Sequence record: MF498774.1
DNA: 64,000 bases
Strand: one strand, 5' to 3'
This document shows positions 9,801 through 15,628 of the stretch, piece after piece; the stretch's first letter is position 1; each line of letters starts with the position of its first letter. The notes under the pieces are model-generated. The model was not told the origin of the DNA. It ran no database searches and saw nothing but the letters and a program-made list of their open reading frames with translations. Position numbers and translations under genes: made by a program.

Positions 9801-10050
9801 TATGAATTTTTTAGAATCAGAAAAAGTAACTTGGGGTGGAAGAATATACCCGCTAGATATAGCAAACCAAATATGTTCTGTTCAGCCTATAGACCCTGAG
9901 CCATTTCGAAAACTATATGAGCGGGCTAAAGAGAACGAACGTATTAAGAATCGGCTTTCTAAAGCTTTTATGGTCCCTGTATCAAGGATCGACGCATACT
10001 GTGTAGAAGCATATCGACTTGGTATAAAAGAAAGTAAAAATAAAAGTTAA
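9790..10050 (+). CDS. Hypothetical protein
   Basis: ORF overlapping the upstream stop. Confidence 0.55.
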   Translation: MRNDMNFLESEKVTWGGRIYPLDIANQICSVQPIDPEPFRKLYERAKENERIKNRLSKAFMVPVSRIDAYCVEAYRLGIKESKNKS

Positions 10051-10087
10051 ACATACTTTCTAACTGTGATATGATGTTTATATAAAT
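10039..10087 (+). promoter_or_regulatory. Sigma70-type promoter for tRNA-Leu(TAA)
   Basis: GTTAAACA...TGATATGAT; near-identical copy at 11198-11246. Confidence 0.75.
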
Positions 10088-10089
10088 GA

Positions 10090-10182
10090 GCGTGAGTGGC
10101 GAAGTTGGTTGAAACGCATCGGACTTAAAATCCGATACTGCATAATGGCACATCGTGGGTTCGATTCCCACCTCACGTACCA
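10090..10182 (+). tRNA. tRNA-Leu(TAA)
   Basis: Cloverleaf, TCGGA-CTTAAAA-TCCGA anticodon arm, long variable arm, GTTCGATT, encoded CCA. Confidence 0.95.
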
Positions 10183-10417
10183 AATACGAGATGATAAACT
10201 CAAATTACTTTTGTTGAATGAGCTTTTTGGACGTTATGTGAGTTTATCATCTCTCAAATTCAATATGAGATGCTTAATATGAACGTATACATCAGAAATT
10301 ACATGTGTGGAGTCCTTTGGGGTAGTATCTTCAACGAAGAACACTGTAAAGGTAAATGTGTAAAGATTATGCGCGGTAAACATTTGAAGCCTTTCTATCA
10401 AAAATCGAGATATTAAA

Positions 10418-10807
10418 ATGAAAGTGAAGCTTGGGGCTTACAACCTTAATGAAAAAAGTTCTTTGGTTAATACGAACGGATTAAAATTCATTTTGAATGA
10501 ACAAGTTATAGATGAATTTTCTAAAAAACTACCTGTTCTAATCAATTTTGGTCAAAAATGTTTTAACATTGATAATGCTAAAGATACTCCGGATCCGGTT
10601 GGTATTCTTAATTCCATAGAAACTTACAAGAAAGATAATATCATTATTGTTACTGGTGATGTAGAAATAACCAATGACAAAGTATATGATGTTCATGGGT
10701 GCCTTCCTTCTTTTTGTGTCCGATCTTTAGCTATTCGTAACGGTGATACTTACAAAGTTGGAGAAATTATTGCATGGGATATGGAAATATATGAAGGTTT
10801 ATCATGA
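10418..10807 (+). CDS. Hypothetical protein
   Basis: ORF track. Confidence 0.65.
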   Translation: MKVKLGAYNLNEKSSLVNTNGLKFILNEQVIDEFSKKLPVLINFGQKCFNIDNAKDTPDPVGILNSIETYKKDNIIIVTGDVEITNDKVYDVHGCLPSFCVRSLAIRNGDTYKVGEIIAWDMEIYEGLS

Positions 10808-11202
10808 ATAAACATGATATTCATCTCATTGGTATTAGTAAGTTTATCAAGAAAGGTCTTACTGTGGTTCAATCAAGTTTGATCTTCAAACAAACCAGTG
10901 AAGAATGGAAAAATATCCATGGTGTTGATGTAGACAAGATTTATTGCTATATTAACAACGAGGGAAAGGATATCTACGCAATTGGTAGACTTAGATCCTG
11001 TTGCGGACCTTGGTTGAGTGTTAGTTGTCGGTCTCTCCGTAAAAAAGGTTATATAGCATTTGACTTTAACGATGAAATTGAGATACCATATGGTTCAGGG
11101 ATGAAAACTGCTTATAGGGTATTGTTTTCTGACACCCCTAAATACGAGTATGATGAAGAAGCTAGACATCCAGTCGCTTACTTCGAAAAATACTTCAAAT
11201 AA
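10804..11202 (+). CDS. Hypothetical protein
   Basis: ORF track; ATGA overlap with the upstream gene. Confidence 0.7.
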   Translation: MNKHDIHLIGISKFIKKGLTVVQSSLIFKQTSEEWKNIHGVDVDKIYCYINNEGKDIYAIGRLRSCCGPWLSVSCRSLRKKGYIAFDFNDEIEIPYGSGMKTAYRVLFSDTPKYEYDEEARHPVAYFEKYFK

Positions 11203-11246
11203 AAGTTAAACATCCTTTCTAACTGTGATATGATGTTTATATAAAT
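11198..11246 (+). promoter_or_regulatory. Sigma70-type promoter for the main tRNA run
   Basis: One mismatch versus 10039-10087; ends 2 nt before tRNA-Arg. Confidence 0.75.
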
Positions 11247-11247
11247 T

Positions 11248-11324
11248 GCGCTGTTAGCTCAGTTGGATAGAGCAACGTTCTTCTAAAGCGTGGGTCACTG
11301 GTTCGAATCCAGTACGGCGCACCA
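11248..11324 (+). tRNA. tRNA-Arg(TCT)
   Basis: Cloverleaf, loop CTTCTAA, encoded CCA. Confidence 0.95.
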
Positions 11325-11408
11325 CGGGATGTGGTGAAATTGGCAGACACACTAGATTTAGGTTCTAGCGCCATAGGCGTGACGGTTCGAGTCCGTCCAT
11401 CCCGACCA
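11325..11408 (+). tRNA. tRNA-Leu(TAG)
   Basis: CTAGA-TTTAGGT-TCTAG anticodon arm, encoded CCA. Confidence 0.95.
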
Positions 11409-11409
11409 A

Positions 11410-11485
11410 GCGGGTAAGGTGTTTATGGATACATGCAAGCCTTCCAAGTTTGAGTAGACCGGATCGTTACCGGCTACCCGCTCCA
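11410..11485 (+). tRNA. Atypical tRNA-Gly(TCC)
   Basis: 76-nt cloverleaf, loop CTTCCAA, encoded CCA; A8, U14, T-loop ATCGTTA. Confidence 0.85.
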
Positions 11486-11496
11486 AGATTTAAAAT

Positions 11497-11566
11497 TGAT
11501 GTGTTACAGCTATCAGCTCACCGTTGAAAGAATACGGATAAGTCGGCTCGACTAAAGAACATATCA
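11497..11566 (+). ncRNA. Candidate 70-nt four-way-junction RNA
   Basis: 9-bp closing stem plus three short arms, between two tRNAs. Confidence 0.5.
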
Positions 11567-11569
11567 TTT

Positions 11570-11646
11570 GGCCCCTTAGCTCAGTTGGTTAGAGCAACCG
11601 ACTCATAATCGGTTGGTCACTGGTTCGAGTCCAGTAGGGGCCACCA
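11570..11646 (+). tRNA. tRNA-Ile2(CAT), ileX-like
   Basis: GGCCCCT acceptor stem and body like enterobacterial ileX; loop CTCATAA. Confidence 0.9.
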
Positions 11647-11668
11647 AATTTTTGATGAGAGCTATATT

Positions 11669-11863
11669 ATGTCTGGTATAAAATCCATAATTGAAAATTG
11701 GTCAGTTGGTGATGGTATAATCCATTGGAAGAATGGACGCCATAGTTTAGTAGTCTTTGGGTTTGCTCCAAATGGAGAACCTGCCTTTAAGTTTAAAGGT
11801 AAGAGTAAACTTACATCAGTAAGACAGATCGAAAAATCCATAGTTAATGCATATATTCTATAG
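11669..11863 (+). CDS. Hypothetical protein within the tRNA island
   Basis: 64-aa ORF with SD. Confidence 0.55.
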   Translation: MSGIKSIIENWSVGDGIIHWKNGRHSLVVFGFAPNGEPAFKFKGKSKLTSVRQIEKSIVNAYIL

Positions 11864-12020
11864 TTGTAAGCTCTCACGAATTTAATGGTCGTTGACCTTA
11901 CGATAATAATGAAGCGATACAGAGTCCCATCGCTTCTAAAAATATCAAAAGGGATGTTGATGCGCGTATGTAGCCGGGTTATAATGACCAAGATTCATGA
12001 AGGGTGAAAGACCACCCTAA
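11864..12020 (+). ncRNA. Candidate structured RNA
   Basis: Consecutive hairpins, including GAAGCGAT/ATCGCTTC (11911-11936). Confidence 0.35.
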
Positions 12021-12027
12021 ATATCAT

Positions 12028-12105
12028 AGCGGGGTGGAGAAGTCAGGAGTTCTCGCCAGACTCATTATCTGGAAATCGGTGGTTCAAATCCACCTCCCGC
12101 TTCCA
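12028..12105 (+). tRNA. tRNA-Met(CAT), initiator-like body
   Basis: AGCGGGGTGGAG start like fMet; CCAGA-CTCATTA-TCTGG arm; encoded CCA; CCTAAATA at 12016-12023. Confidence 0.9.
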
Positions 12106-12106
12106 A

Positions 12107-12182
12107 TGGCGTGTAGTTCAGTAGGTAGAACAGCGGACTGTTAATCCGTATGTCGTGGGTTCGAATCCCACCTCGCCAGCCA
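12107..12182 (+). tRNA. tRNA-Asn(GTT)
   Basis: GCGGA-CTGTTAA-TCCGT arm, encoded CCA. Confidence 0.95.
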
Positions 12183-12188
12183 AATTCT

Positions 12189-12279
12189 GGATGTTCGGCT
12201 ACGATGGCGGTGTAGCGGCGGACTGTAAATCCGTTCCCTCTGGGTAAACAAGTTGGTTCGAATCCAACAGCATCCACCA
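12189..12279 (+). tRNA. tRNA-Tyr(GTA)
   Basis: GCGGA-CTGTAAA-TCCGT arm, long variable arm, encoded CCA. Confidence 0.93.
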
Positions 12280-12282
12280 AAT

Positions 12283-12430
12283 AGAAGAAGTTAGAAGACG
12301 TTCTGATAAAATCCTCGGAGACGATGCCCCCTTGCGGTTTTAAACCGTTACGGATAAGCACGGGGTAATCCAAATCAACCATTATAGGGATGTGGTCATC
12401 TGGTATGTAAAATACAGTTGGTTTGGAACT
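12283..12430 (+). ncRNA. Candidate structured RNA of about 150 nt
   Basis: 11-bp stem 12369-12379/12417-12427 plus nested stems; no + strand ORF. Confidence 0.45.
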
Positions 12431-12433
12431 TTT

Positions 12434-12509
12434 CGGTGATTAGCGCAGTTGGTAGCGCGTCTGGTTTGGGACCAGAGGGTCACAGGTTCGAGTCCTGTAT
12501 CACCGACCA
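12434..12509 (+). tRNA. tRNA-Pro(TGG)
   Basis: TCTGG-TTTGGGA-CCAGA arm, encoded CCA. Confidence 0.95.
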
Positions 12510-12787
12510 CTTAGCACAAAGAACGGGTAACGACGTATGCCCCGGAATAAGCCAGCCATAGAGAATCTGGATATCCTGAAACGTGCCTTTAGGTTTCAGG
12601 CGGGATTGGTAGTATAAAGACGATATGGTAACTACTCCTTGACAAGCAGGGTTGAACTTGAGGTAACTGTCCTTTACCAAACAACGAACAGATGGACAAA
12701 ATCAGTTGAACGTCCTTCCTCCTTGTGATAGCATGTCAACTACATTAGGATATAATCACAGTCTAACGATCCTGATTATAATCCGCT
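12510..12787 (+). ncRNA. Candidate structured RNA of about 280 nt
   Basis: Multiple 5-8 bp stems, possible pseudoknot, no + strand ORF, between two tRNAs. Confidence 0.55.
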
Positions 12788-12863
12788 GCCGAATTAGCTC
12801 ATCTGGTAGAGCACAGCCTTTGTAACGCTGGGGTGGTCCGTTCGAGTCGGACATTCGGCACCA
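12788..12863 (+). tRNA. tRNA-Thr(TGT)
   Basis: Cloverleaf, loop TTTGTAA, encoded CCA. Confidence 0.93.
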
Positions 12864-12869
12864 AATTTT

Positions 12870-13335
12870 GGATTCTCGTCAATAGTCCGGTCTATGAGAA
12901 TCGACGCTTTAAGTAGCCCACCGGTATTTGTAAAAAATCTAGTGAAAGCTAGAAAATAAAAACCGAACCCCGACCTCTCCCATTACTCAAATGGTGATGT
13001 AGGTTCCTTCCCTGTAATAAGGTTCTAGTCCGTGACGGGTAAAAGGTTACATAGGGAGTATTGCTTGTGAATGACCACTGATTCAAGCCATCACATAAGC
13101 TCGTCCGTTATGACGTTAAATATAAGGCTTAGATTCCCATAAGGGCCTAAGCGTAAAAGTAACGAGCAAGACCGTTTTGCAGGCGTAGCCCATTGGGGTG
13201 ATGATGTTTGTATGTTGGGCTCGGATAGCCAATGCTATTAAGTCCGGTGATGGTGCGACCGGATCGATTTACGGAACCACATCAACAAGTATGTGCCTTG
13301 GTGGTTCGACCTGCTTTGCAGCCGCACATGAAGCT
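12870..13335 (+). ncRNA. Candidate large multi-branched RNA of about 470 nt
   Basis: At least 10 nested helices found by hand, GAAA tetraloop, no ORF. Confidence 0.65.
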
Positions 13336-13337
13336 AA

Positions 13338-13682
13338 AACTTAAAAAGAGAGGTTGTATATGTCACCGCTAAACGCAAGCCGTTAGGACGTAAAGGTAAA
13401 AATAGTGTTTTTGTAAATGGTTATACCAATAGTGGTATTCCGGTTTTATGTAATATATTTTATCAGTTTGAAACAAATGGTATTCCGTTGGATATTCTGA
13501 TAGAGAAATTTTATAATTCCGGTTATATTATTGATTGGGTTTCTTTCGTTAATGATGCTTTCGAGATCGGATGGAAGAAAGAAACTGTAATAAAAAAGAT
13601 AAAGTATGCATTTGATGATATTGAGATAAATGATTCAAATGAAATACTAAACCGTGTGATTAAATACATAGAAAGCCTGTAA
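13338..13682 (+). CDS. Small protein resembling an alanyl-tRNA synthetase helical fragment; start codon unclear
   Basis: FYQFETNGIPLD resembles AlaRS F.LYDTYGFPLD; frame open from 13338 with no ATG. Confidence 0.55.
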   Translation, partial: NLKREVVYVTAKRKPLGRKGKNSVFVNGYTNSGIPVLCNIFYQFETNGIPLDILIEKFYNSGYIIDWVSFVNDAFEIGWKKETVIKKIKYAFDDIEINDSNEILNRVIKYIESL

Positions 13683-13692
13683 GGAATGATAT

Positions 13693-13944
13693 ATGGGTAA
13701 GACATTTCGTCGTAAAAATGAAAAACATCTGGACAGTTGGTATGGTGATGAACTTAAAGTGAATCGGGATCTGGGAGATAAATATCCTAGTTATCCAGAA
13801 TCGGGTGTCAAAGATCGTTATAATACATTGAGTCGTCAGCGAGATCGTAAATTGAAACATGATATCATGCACGGTAATCACGATGTTTTTGTTGATGATG
13901 ATTACGAAATGAAAAAGGCTAACGCCGGTTATCAATATAGTTAA
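13693..13944 (+). CDS. Basic hypothetical protein (MGKTFRR)
   Basis: ORF with SD. Confidence 0.75.
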   Translation: MGKTFRRKNEKHLDSWYGDELKVNRDLGDKYPSYPESGVKDRYNTLSRQRDRKLKHDIMHGNHDVFVDDDYEMKKANAGYQYS

Positions 13945-13947
13945 GAT

Positions 13948-14192
13948 TTTAAAGTGTACGCGCCCCAAGAGTGGCGCAGCGGCGTCAAACAATACGAGTC
14001 AAGGGTAAAGGTGATACCCTGTATTGTCACTAGACGAAAAGAGACCATATTGCCTCGATTATGGTCCCCGTTTTAAAGAGGGTGGTGTGACCTACCACTA
14101 TCACAAGGTTGTTGTCTGACACCAAAGACAACGTTCGGCAACGGGGACTTTATCTTGCTTTGACTGGCTTGATATAGTCCCCGTTTTTCTTT
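13948..14192 (+). ncRNA. Candidate structured RNA of about 245 nt ending in an intrinsic terminator
   Basis: Six hairpins, then a 10-bp stem AACGGGGACT/AGTCCCCGTT and a T tract. Confidence 0.55.
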
Positions 14193-14212
14193 TTATTAAC
14201 GGAGAATTTGAT

Positions 14213-14675: not shown

Positions 14676-15230
14676 ATGATGATATCGCCAAACAGTTTCT
14701 TTAGAGACGAATATGTTAGTATGGTAAACAAAAAATTAAAATTATTTAAAAGTTCCGAATATCTAGACAGGAGTCGATTGATGATATCTCCTGATGCATT
14801 CCAACAAGAGTTGGGGACTATATGCTTGGATATGGGAAGACAAACAGGAAAAACATCTGCTGCTATTATGTTGTTAGAAGAACATAAAGACGCTTTGTAT
14901 GTTGTTCACAACCATCCTACTATCAGATCTATATTGTCGGTGGCACCACATTTAAAAGACCAAGTGTTGTCAATTAGCGACTTTGTTAATAGGTTTTATT
15001 CTCGTGGTACATACAATCATGTTATTCATGGAAGTAGGATTGAAAAATATAGTATGATCATTATTGATGAACCTTATTTCACATGTACCAATGGTCAGAG
15101 ACAATTCACTAATCGTAGTAGTTGTTCATATCACTTGGATGGTGGTAAACAAATAAATACCACATACGGTCTAATTAGTTATGCCGCATTCAGGATGGAA
15201 TCATTAATCGTTAAATTAGGAATGCAATGA
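14676..15230 (+). CDS. Small stand-alone P-loop NTPase with terminase-ATPase-like motifs
   Basis: Walker A GRQTGKT, Walker B IIIDE. Confidence 0.6.
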   Translation: MMISPNSFFRDEYVSMVNKKLKLFKSSEYLDRSRLMISPDAFQQELGTICLDMGRQTGKTSAAIMLLEEHKDALYVVHNHPTIRSILSVAPHLKDQVLSISDFVNRFYSRGTYNHVIHGSRIEKYSMIIIDEPYFTCTNGQRQFTNRSSCSYHLDGGKQINTTYGLISYAAFRMESLIVKLGMQ

Positions 15231-15628
15231 AAATAGCTTATAAATATGATATGAAACGAATCTCAGATAGAGTATCTAGATTTGTGACTCTTGGATTAAA
15301 GACGGTTGCAAAGATCCACTATCTCCATCTTACAACCAACAATTATGCGCTCCATATGGCACTTGATGAGTTCTATAAGGAATTCCCAGATGACTACCTA
15401 GATTCGGTTGCAGAGAGCGCCTTGGCTAACGACATCGAGTTGGTATACAATCACTTTGAAGTTGCGTCAGACGACGCTCTGGGTGTGTTACAGGGACTTT
15501 ACGACAACGGTTCTGAGTTGGCTGAGTTACTTGATGGAAAACCAGAGTTCAAAGGAACCCTAAACGCACTTGAGGATTCGTTGGAATTCATTAAGTTGGT
15601 GATCTACAAGGTAAAACGTTTCAAATAA
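15227..15628 (+). CDS. Ferritin/Dps-like four-helix protein
   Basis: HYLHLTT..YALHMALDEFY..LDSVAES pattern. Confidence 0.6.
   Translation: MKIAYKYDMKRISDRVSRFVTLGLKTVAKIHYLHLTTNNYALHMALDEFYKEFPDDYLDSVAESALANDIELVYNHFEVASDDALGVLQGLYDNGSELAELLDGKPEFKGTLNALEDSLEFIKLVIYKVKRFK

Follow-up and report, generated by a model that had tools for sequence, protein, structure and literature searches.

The 64,000-nucleotide (nt) stretch of sequence record MF498774.1 analyzed here, called the window in the following, carries an island of ten tRNA genes, and comparison with related phages indicates that at least four further structured RNAs, designated S5, S6b, S6c and S7, are encoded in the same island. All four have conserved predicted secondary structures on the tRNA strand, which are shown by compensatory changes far above those in slid controls. 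We lean, with a confidence slightly better than even, towards the reading that these are independently folding RNAs, at least four in number, which are released by tRNA processing and may act in trans. Judged by its sequence, the window derives from Aeromonas phage AS-yj, a T4-like phage of the genus Ceceduovirus: the 4.3-kb region under study is 100% identical to this phage and shares 95-99% identity with the CC2-like phages, which belong to the genus Ceceduovirus in the subfamily Emmerichvirinae of the family Straboviridae. The Ishigurovirus phages 65, avDM6, ZPAH1 and Aswh_1 (73-92% identity) served as distant relatives for comparison.

The two RNAs of the T4 tRNA cluster have been without a known function for fifty years, partly for want of comparisons. 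In the T4-type Aeromonas phages at least four further non-tRNA RNAs appear to occupy the same niche, each under selection for structure, and S6b is common to T5-like and other phages, where it lies almost always in tRNA arrays. Odd RNAs in phage tRNA clusters thus move from anecdote to a recurring class open to comparative study, with four candidate families that are absent from Rfam 15, just as phage tRNA clusters are coming to be seen as counter-defence loci.

An earlier note on this DNA had described ten tRNAs alternating with seven structured spacers, together about 1.4 kb of non-tRNA RNA. The ten tRNAs are all present on the + strand between 10090 and 12863 (ARAGORN), and the seven spacers are near the claimed sizes (87, 84, 164, 154, 278, 477 and 248 nt for S1 to S7), with a total of about 1.49 kb. 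A strict alternation does not hold, as tRNAs are grouped in runs (Arg-Leu-Gly and Met-Asn-Tyr) and the island also contains open reading frames (ORFs). The proposed set of structured RNAs stands for S5, S6b, S6c and S7, all of which have compensatory changes, and falls for S3, which is mostly a predicted promoter.

Conserved structures of S5, S6c and S7

S5 is predicted to be a multi-helix RNA of ~190 nt (12510..12703, + strand) that starts directly after tRNA-Pro in the 278-nt spacer of the same name (12510-12787, + strand), with helices from about 12525 to 12698. The consensus fold of the alignment (alifold) has 45 pairs in nine helices with 99.6% of the cells paired, and six pairs (16 cells) have changed on both sides compared with at most one pair in the slid controls; in addition, an extra base pair has been inserted in one stem. 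A similar picture was obtained for S6c, a candidate RNA of ~145 nt with four helical arms (13122..13271, + strand; helices about 13125-13264; 172 bits with covariance model R3), for which 43 pairs are 99.3% paired and six pairs have changed on both sides, against none in the slid controls. The alignments of S5, S6c and S7 comprise five to seven sequences from three or four lineages, and since relatedness inflates shuffle statistics, the slid controls are the fairer comparison.

The largest number of compensatory changes among the four RNAs was found in S7, a predicted RNA of ~215 nt (13965..14196, + strand) which ends in an intrinsic terminator and lies in the 248-nt spacer 13945-14192 (+ strand), with well-supported helices from about 13983. 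Its 56 pairs are 95.7% paired, and 23 of them (34 cells) have changed on both sides, compared with two to six pairs in the slid controls, so that the structure is kept at an identity of only about 75%. Five helices lie upstream of the terminator, and the unpaired linkers between the helices are the most conserved letters. A second hairpin with a short U-run is located inside S7 (14041-14075), and its 3' half repeats the 3' arm of the terminator (repeat D7); it may be a weaker upstream terminator or a processing site.

The helices of S5, S6c and S7 contain many G-U pairs, which correspond to C-A mismatches on the opposite strand, and the G-U pairs in the helices of all four RNAs, S6b included, point to the tRNA strand as the RNA strand. 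Outside the Emmerichvirinae, the covariance models of S5 (R2) and S6c (R3) found no match in the T4, Aeh1, Ah1 and T5-like loci, and within this subfamily both matched. Scans for more relatives with 17-mers from S7 and S6c gave isolates and chance matches only, and a search of IMG/VR with a neighbouring protein as query returned CC2 and AS-zj only.

In AP1, P19, CC2, ZPAH1 and Aswh_1 a tRNA-Trp (CCA) follows within a few nt after S6c (L018 4278-4352, L014 6521-6595, L017 4861-4935, L004 6751-6824 and L012 6152-6226). AS-yj and its closest relatives lack this tRNA and S6c is directly joined to S6d (13264-13275). Phage Assk has about 75 nt at the tRNA-Trp slot that ARAGORN does not call a tRNA. 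CC2 and Assk also share a 137-nt insertion between S6b and S6c, which according to model R3 is a partial extra copy of S6c (CC2, L014 6233-6315; Assk, L019 5575-5630; expectation values (E) of about 3e-8 and 5e-7).

The S6b motif

S6b is a new motif of ~95 nt. In AS-yj it spans 12956..13055 on the + strand (~95-100 nt; 105.8 bits with model R1) in the 477-nt spacer S6 (12864-13340, + strand), which also holds S6a, S6c and S6d. Using S6 as blastn query, a core of ~95 nt (12956-13055) was detected in several other phage groups, namely in T5-like Aeromonas phages (Shenzhenvirus), in Ahp1_CNU (Straboviridae), Citrobacter phage Ci1, Escherichia phage ESCO10 and Shewanella phage KASIA. Model R1 in combination with pattern scans of metagenomes and genomes led to a family of 14 distinct members; five hits of these scans were true new members and two were weak, the remainder being chance, and the strict pattern found isolates only in IMG/VR. 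The core strings occurred in none of the papers covered by a literature search.

The motif is built from a closing helix P1 with three covarying states, a hairpin P2 that varies freely in length and sequence, a hairpin P3 with an invariant 9-nt loop, a 3-bp hairpin P4 with two covarying pairs, and a 3' tail that is conserved. Over the 14 members 95.5% of the cells are paired, compared with 36-48% in the slid controls, and five pairs (17 cells) have changed on both sides. A pseudoknot between loop and tail was considered and rejected: three of its pairs never vary, and the other two are each broken, uncompensated, in four members. The members with broken pairs carry the other tail type.

Eleven of the 14 copies are located inside tRNA arrays of T5-like, T4-like and metagenomic origin, in each case on the tRNA strand, and in two metagenomic contigs S6b ends 6 nt before a tRNA-Leu. 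In some lineages of the Emmerichvirinae S6b is found between S6a and S6c, in others it is missing from this place, and on account of this variable presence S6b appears to behave as a movable module. An arrangement as in Aeromonas phage AhSzw-1 was also seen on a 4.9-kb contig with 23 tRNAs and an S6b copy (L032, JBOFFJ010000068.1), which is labelled as a Phocaeicola sp. metagenome-assembled genome (MAG) and looks like a fragment of a T5-like phage binned into a bacterial MAG. Two weak matches of R1 (E about 1e-3) on a 122-kb lake metagenome contig (L030 4608-4699) and in a Planctomycetota MAG (L031 2203-2294) have the P3 hairpin and its loop in common with S6b and little else, and no tRNAs are nearby; they may represent a distant subfamily or chance. 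In KASIA, the terminase large-subunit gene upstream of S6b (L011 1-2079) is annotated as three joined pieces with an HNH endonuclease gene inside, which suggests intervening sequences.

Roughly a third of the S6b positions do not vary between unrelated phages, and they surround a hairpin that varies freely, as is typical for aptamers and small ribozymes. S6b could accordingly be a cis-regulatory or catalytic RNA, either a riboswitch-like leader or a self-cleaving element that helps to cut the precursor, and this would agree with its position always upstream of something on the same strand, which is a tRNA 6 nt away in the two contigs and an ORF in KASIA and ESCO10. We nevertheless regard this explanation as quite improbable for S6b, as neither a riboswitch nor a ribozyme of Rfam is matched at E up to 10, the downstream gene is inconsistent, an alternative terminator/anti-terminator fold is not evident and the four members of the other tail type break the proposed pseudoknot without compensation.

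A bolder view, which we consider rather unlikely, is that S6b is a new functional RNA class spreading horizontally among the tRNA arrays of unrelated phages, with S5, S6c and S7 as its lineage-specific fellows. S6b could then be a small catalytic or processing RNA, or it could act as a mimic titrating a host factor, for instance a tRNA-directed nuclease or a modification enzyme; a run within its invariant 9-nt loop resembles an anticodon loop. If true, S5, S6c and S7 would belong to a wider unrecognised phage RNA repertoire riding on tRNA processing.

Conservation of the spacers

The spacers have a G+C content of 0.42-0.50 compared with 0.27-0.37 in the ORFs. Their identity to Ishigurovirus is 86-92% for S3, 84-85% for S5, 96% for S6a, 85-95% for S6c, 96% for S6d and 75-76% for S7, and S6b, which among Ishigurovirus occurs in ZPAH1 and Aswh_1 only, is 84-85% identical. 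ORFs C, E, F and I reach 66-80%, with ORF D as the exception among the ORFs (94% identity to phage 65). The comparison between spacers and neighbouring ORFs that the earlier note had proposed as a check is therefore positive for S5, S6b and S6c, which are better conserved than most of these ORFs, and negative for S7, whose 75-76% is no higher.

No spacer matched any family of Rfam 15 at E up to 10 with permissive filters, known riboswitch and self-cleaving ribozyme families included. Matches to the tRNA clan of Rfam were confined to the annotated tRNAs at the same E limit, and ARAGORN found no extra tRNA in the spacers at a threshold of 90%; the 75% setting also calls coding DNA and is uninformative. 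These results bear on the possibility that the spacers are decayed tRNAs or debris of homing endonucleases which drift neutrally. Relatives indeed fill these slots with additional tRNAs (Lys, Trp, Ala, Ile, Ser, Asp), a homing endonuclease gene is present in the island of P19, ARAGORN makes odd tRNA-like calls in spacers of phage 65 and avDM6, and S2 and S4 are lineage-specific. Apart from the missing tRNA matches, S5, S6c, S6a and S6d are more conserved than the ORFs, and the compensatory changes indicate selection on pairing. For the spacers as a whole we take neutral decay to be very improbable; it is contradicted for S5, S6b, S6c and S7, and possible for S2 and S4.

Hidden small protein genes or sites acting at the DNA level (origin, recombination, packaging) would be another source of conservation, and short + strand frames exist, for example of 46-48 codons over 13198-13372. 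These frames are not kept, since the frame over S6c/S6d differs in phage 65 and is interrupted by the inserted tRNA-Trp in others; moreover, the substitutions are pairwise-compensatory and not codon-periodic, and the asymmetry of the G-U pairs points to an RNA from one strand. We give this explanation hardly any credence.

Proposed release and possible role of the RNAs

We propose that the island is transcribed as one or a few units, from sigma70-type promoters at about 10048, 11207 and 11957 to a terminator at 14140-14196, and that it encodes ten tRNAs, five small ORFs and at least four non-tRNA RNAs (S5, S6b, S6c and S7). RNase P cleavage at the 5' end of each downstream tRNA would free the RNA upstream of it, and the A/U-rich trailer that comes after each CCA would be the site of RNase E action and of 3' trimming by exonuclease; a repeated A/U-rich trailer after tRNAs is found as repeat family D2. 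By these steps the host enzymes of tRNA maturation would release S5, S6b, S6c and S7 as discrete stable RNAs. We infer discrete release because the RNAs have tRNAs as neighbours, or a tRNA on one side and the terminator on the other, and the mechanism because the bacterial pathway of tRNA maturation is established and T4 offers a precedent: its species 1 and 2 RNAs arise by the tRNA-maturation enzymes. Release from the tRNA precursor as stable species is the most likely fate of the RNAs.

With lower confidence, we suggest that the RNAs are more than spacers and have a host or phage partner on which they act in trans. We favor trans action over a purely cis role for two reasons: long unpaired parts of S5, S6c, S7 and S6b do not vary between genera or families, and S6b is portable, having moved as a unit between unrelated phages. 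These two features are no proof of trans action, and the roles as decoys or in translation that had been put forward for the spacer RNAs are speculation.

The same layout could be read differently, in that the structured spacers are cis-acting parts of the tRNA precursor, such as insulators, entry sites for RNase III or RNase E, or attenuators, which set the processing order and the tRNA yield and have no life after cleavage. We regard this as a serious alternative, to be held tentatively. All elements are found between tRNAs and on the tRNA strand, S1 forms a long and almost perfectly paired hairpin of the kind that RNase III takes as substrate, S5b and the leader hairpin of S3 abut tRNA 5' ends, and in every case S6a comes after the final tRNA of a run. 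Insulators need pairing only, yet long unpaired stretches are invariant in S5, S6c, S7 and S6b; furthermore, S6b occurs three times without a nearby tRNA, and S7 comes after two ORFs with no adjoining tRNA.

Several observations weigh against the preferred reading of discrete RNAs that may act in trans. The discrete RNA species are predicted from sequence, and the evidence would fit a cis role in the folding or processing of the precursor as well as trans action. Three S6b copies (ESCO10, KASIA and L027) have no tRNA nearby and are located upstream of ordinary genes, a placement that would also fit a cis-regulatory leader. The alignments of S5, S6c and S7 are so small that relatedness inflates their shuffle statistics, as mentioned above. 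Finally, S1, S2 and S4 are without comparative support and S3 is largely explained as a promoter.

Comparison with known phage RNAs

In T4, rnaC and rnaD derive from transcription of the tRNA region, and no role is known for either (PMC3014915, PMC9697503). Like the AS-yj elements, these species 1 and species 2 RNAs are non-tRNA molecules of 100-200 nt without known function (PMC3014915, PMC9697503), and the genes of both sets lie within, or at the end of, a tRNA cluster in a T4-type phage and have the orientation of the tRNAs. The T4 cluster has two such RNAs, whereas the AS-yj island has four or more. We took the rnaC/rnaD sequences under the accession given in PMC9697503, and neither R1, run with filters off over the T4 tRNA region, nor R2 or R3 matched them. 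A homology of S6b to rnaD, considered on the basis of a closing helix, hairpin loop and tail seen by eye, was rejected, as there was no covariance-model match even with filters off. A blastn search with T4 rnaD matched JS98, which is of the same genus as ESCO10; among the best 60 of 735 records there was no S6b-bearing phage genome and no Aeromonas, Demerecviridae or KASIA phage, and the ten commonest organism names included no Aeromonas or Shewanella phage. The likeness to rnaC and rnaD thus appears, on sequence comparison, to be one of genomic niche and presumed biogenesis and not of family.

GOLLD and ROOL are RNAs of unknown function in phages and prophages that are often found near tRNA islands (PMC12286853). 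They are 500-800 nt long, in contrast to 100-215 nt for the AS-yj units, and neither had a match in the spacers with Rfam at E up to 10. Phage tRNAs can also neutralise anticodon nucleases, as described for T5 tRNA-Lys against PARIS and T5 tRNA-Tyr against retron Eco7 PtuAB (PMC11464382). Such tRNAs likewise come from tRNA clusters, and their value lies in phage-host conflict rather than in codon supply (PMC11464382); they are real tRNAs, whereas the AS-yj elements are not tRNA-like by any model tested. It is against this background that one might imagine the spacer RNAs as decoys. A literature search on stable RNAs of T5 yielded nothing usable. S7 resembles terminator-ended bacterial small RNAs derived from 3' ends in its location behind the final ORF and in its 3' terminus, a strong hairpin with a U-run as is usual for this group. 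It differs in that no promoter of its own was detected and that five conserved helices lie upstream of the terminator, more than in typical members.

Promoters, terminator and the remaining spacers

A 61-nt direct repeat (D4) occurs in two copies of 90% identity at 10027..10087 and 11186..11246 (both + strand). Each copy contains a sigma70-like site with an extended -10 element and ends just before a tRNA; the two copies of a sigma70 promoter described in the earlier note correspond to these predicted sites. In the first copy the hexamers lie at 10048-10075 with a TG-extended -10, and the repeat ends 2 nt before tRNA-Leu; in the second copy the promoter scan placed them at 11207-11234. A third and better candidate is located in S3 (11864..12027, + strand), which consists of two hairpins, a sigma70-type site at 11957-11985 (spacer of 17, 10/12 matches) and a leader hairpin at about 12001-12018 that abuts tRNA-Met (promoter scan and folds). 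The part 11922-12000 is kept in the Cinqassovirus phages Aeh1 and Ah1, there between tRNA-Gln and tRNA-Ser, and S3 is best described as mostly a predicted sigma70-type promoter plus leader. All three sites are conserved and have 9-10 of 12 hexamer matches; the scan found 21 sites in total, with 13.3 expected by chance. A late promoter had been claimed at 12016. It was not confirmed, though on weak evidence: the site is no exact match to the late-promoter octamer of T4-type phages, which has no exact copy anywhere in the island.

The terminator that had been placed at 14140-14192 was found as an inverted repeat (I2; 14140..14196, + strand) with 15-bp arms of 93% complementarity (stem 14140-14185), followed by a T-run. 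The fold z-score of this region, the 3' half of S7, is -5.9, and the terminator stem is kept in ZPAH1 with compensatory changes.

S1, S2 and S4 were found solely in Ceceduovirus genomes that are 87-100% identical and thus provide no comparative information, so that they are unproven as structured RNAs. S1 (10183..10269, + strand; 87 nt) is a long hairpin with a core of 66 nt and arms at 10188-10208 and 10233-10253 (inverted repeat I1); it has a fold z-score of -4.2, and its lower stem is invariant, with no compensatory changes. S2 (11486..11569, + strand; 84 nt) is predicted to fold into three small hairpins, which a 9-bp stem encloses (z-score -2.3), and is 99-100% identical in every relative that has it and absent elsewhere. 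S4 (12280..12433, + strand; 154 nt) folds no better than shuffles (z-score -1.4), and its match to the longer Ala-to-Pro spacer of avDM6 is limited to the first 40 nt. This unannotated spacer between tRNA-Ala and tRNA-Pro measures 410-443 nt in phages 65 and avDM6 (L002 4196-4638 and L003 4014-4422), with 40 nt matching S4. ARAGORN reports odd tRNA-like objects in spacers of avDM6 (L003 4349-4420) and phage 65 (L002 2855-2930), and the Ishigurovirus spacer may hold further RNAs or pseudo-tRNAs.

Smaller elements accompany the four RNAs. S5b (12704..12787, + strand; z-score -2.5) consists of two hairpins, the second of which ends 3 nt before tRNA-Thr, and is conserved in phage 65 and avDM6. S6a (12864..12947, + strand) is a conserved trailer with a hairpin at 12871-12902 and one compensatory pair; its identity of 96% refers to phage 65 and avDM6, where it also comes after the last tRNA. 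The hairpins between S6b and S6c (13056..13121, + strand) are common to ZPAH1 and Aswh_1 only and are not significant (z-score -0.8). S6d (13272..13340, + strand; 69 nt), upstream of ORF E, has no stable fold (z-score 0), and its 96% identity is to phage 65.

tRNAs and ORFs of the island

All tRNAs are encoded on the + strand and were called by ARAGORN, and eight of the ten passed the gathering score of the Rfam tRNA model. The first is tRNA-Leu (UAA) at 10090..10182 (62.3 bits with Rfam tRNA). It is followed by tRNA-Arg (UCU), tRNA-Leu (UAG) and tRNA-Gly (UCC), back to back at 11248..11485, the first copy of tRNA-Met (CAU) at 11570..11646 (also Rfam), and a run of the second tRNA-Met (CAU), tRNA-Asn (GUU) and tRNA-Tyr (GUA) at 12028..12279. 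The last two, tRNA-Pro (UGG) at 12434..12509 and tRNA-Thr (UGU) at 12788..12863, were again found with Rfam as well.

Five ORFs of the island belong to PHROG families of unknown function, and one further ORF of 48 codons is annotated in relatives. Three ORFs for hypothetical phage proteins (10270-10416, 10418-10807 and 10804-11202, + strand; phrog_17866 and phrog_17440; annotated as coding sequences in phage G2) sit between tRNA-Leu and the second promoter copy. ORF D (11669..11863, + strand; 64 amino acids, hypothetical, phrog_21687) is annotated as 65p133 in phage 65, and ORF F (13693..13944, + strand; 83 amino acids) belongs to phrog_1774. ORF E (13341..13682, + strand; phrog_22967) had been labelled as a fragment resembling alanyl-tRNA synthetase (AlaRS), a label that all sequence tests spoke against: there was no match in Pfam, AlaRS included, at E up to 1, none in NCBIfam and none in a profile search of the PDB, and phmmer against PDB sequences at E up to 10 found a copper ATPase only (E 1.2). 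Relative to a homologue of 140 amino acids (P0001, from a ZPAH1-like contig; 66% identity) ORF E has one 5' truncation, and there is no ordinary start codon in the conserved N-terminal part.

The island of phage P19 lacks the first tRNA-Met, ORF D and S2 and contains a putative homing endonuclease gene (L017 2901-3404), an arrangement that fits endonuclease-driven reshuffling of island modules. Just downstream of the AS-yj island, the ORF at 15227-15628 is a homologue of a gene annotated as 'starvation-inducible transcriptional regulator' (rI.-1). The rI.-1 gene is also found at the edge of the tRNA island in Aeh1 and Ah1, and the linkage is thus kept across genera.

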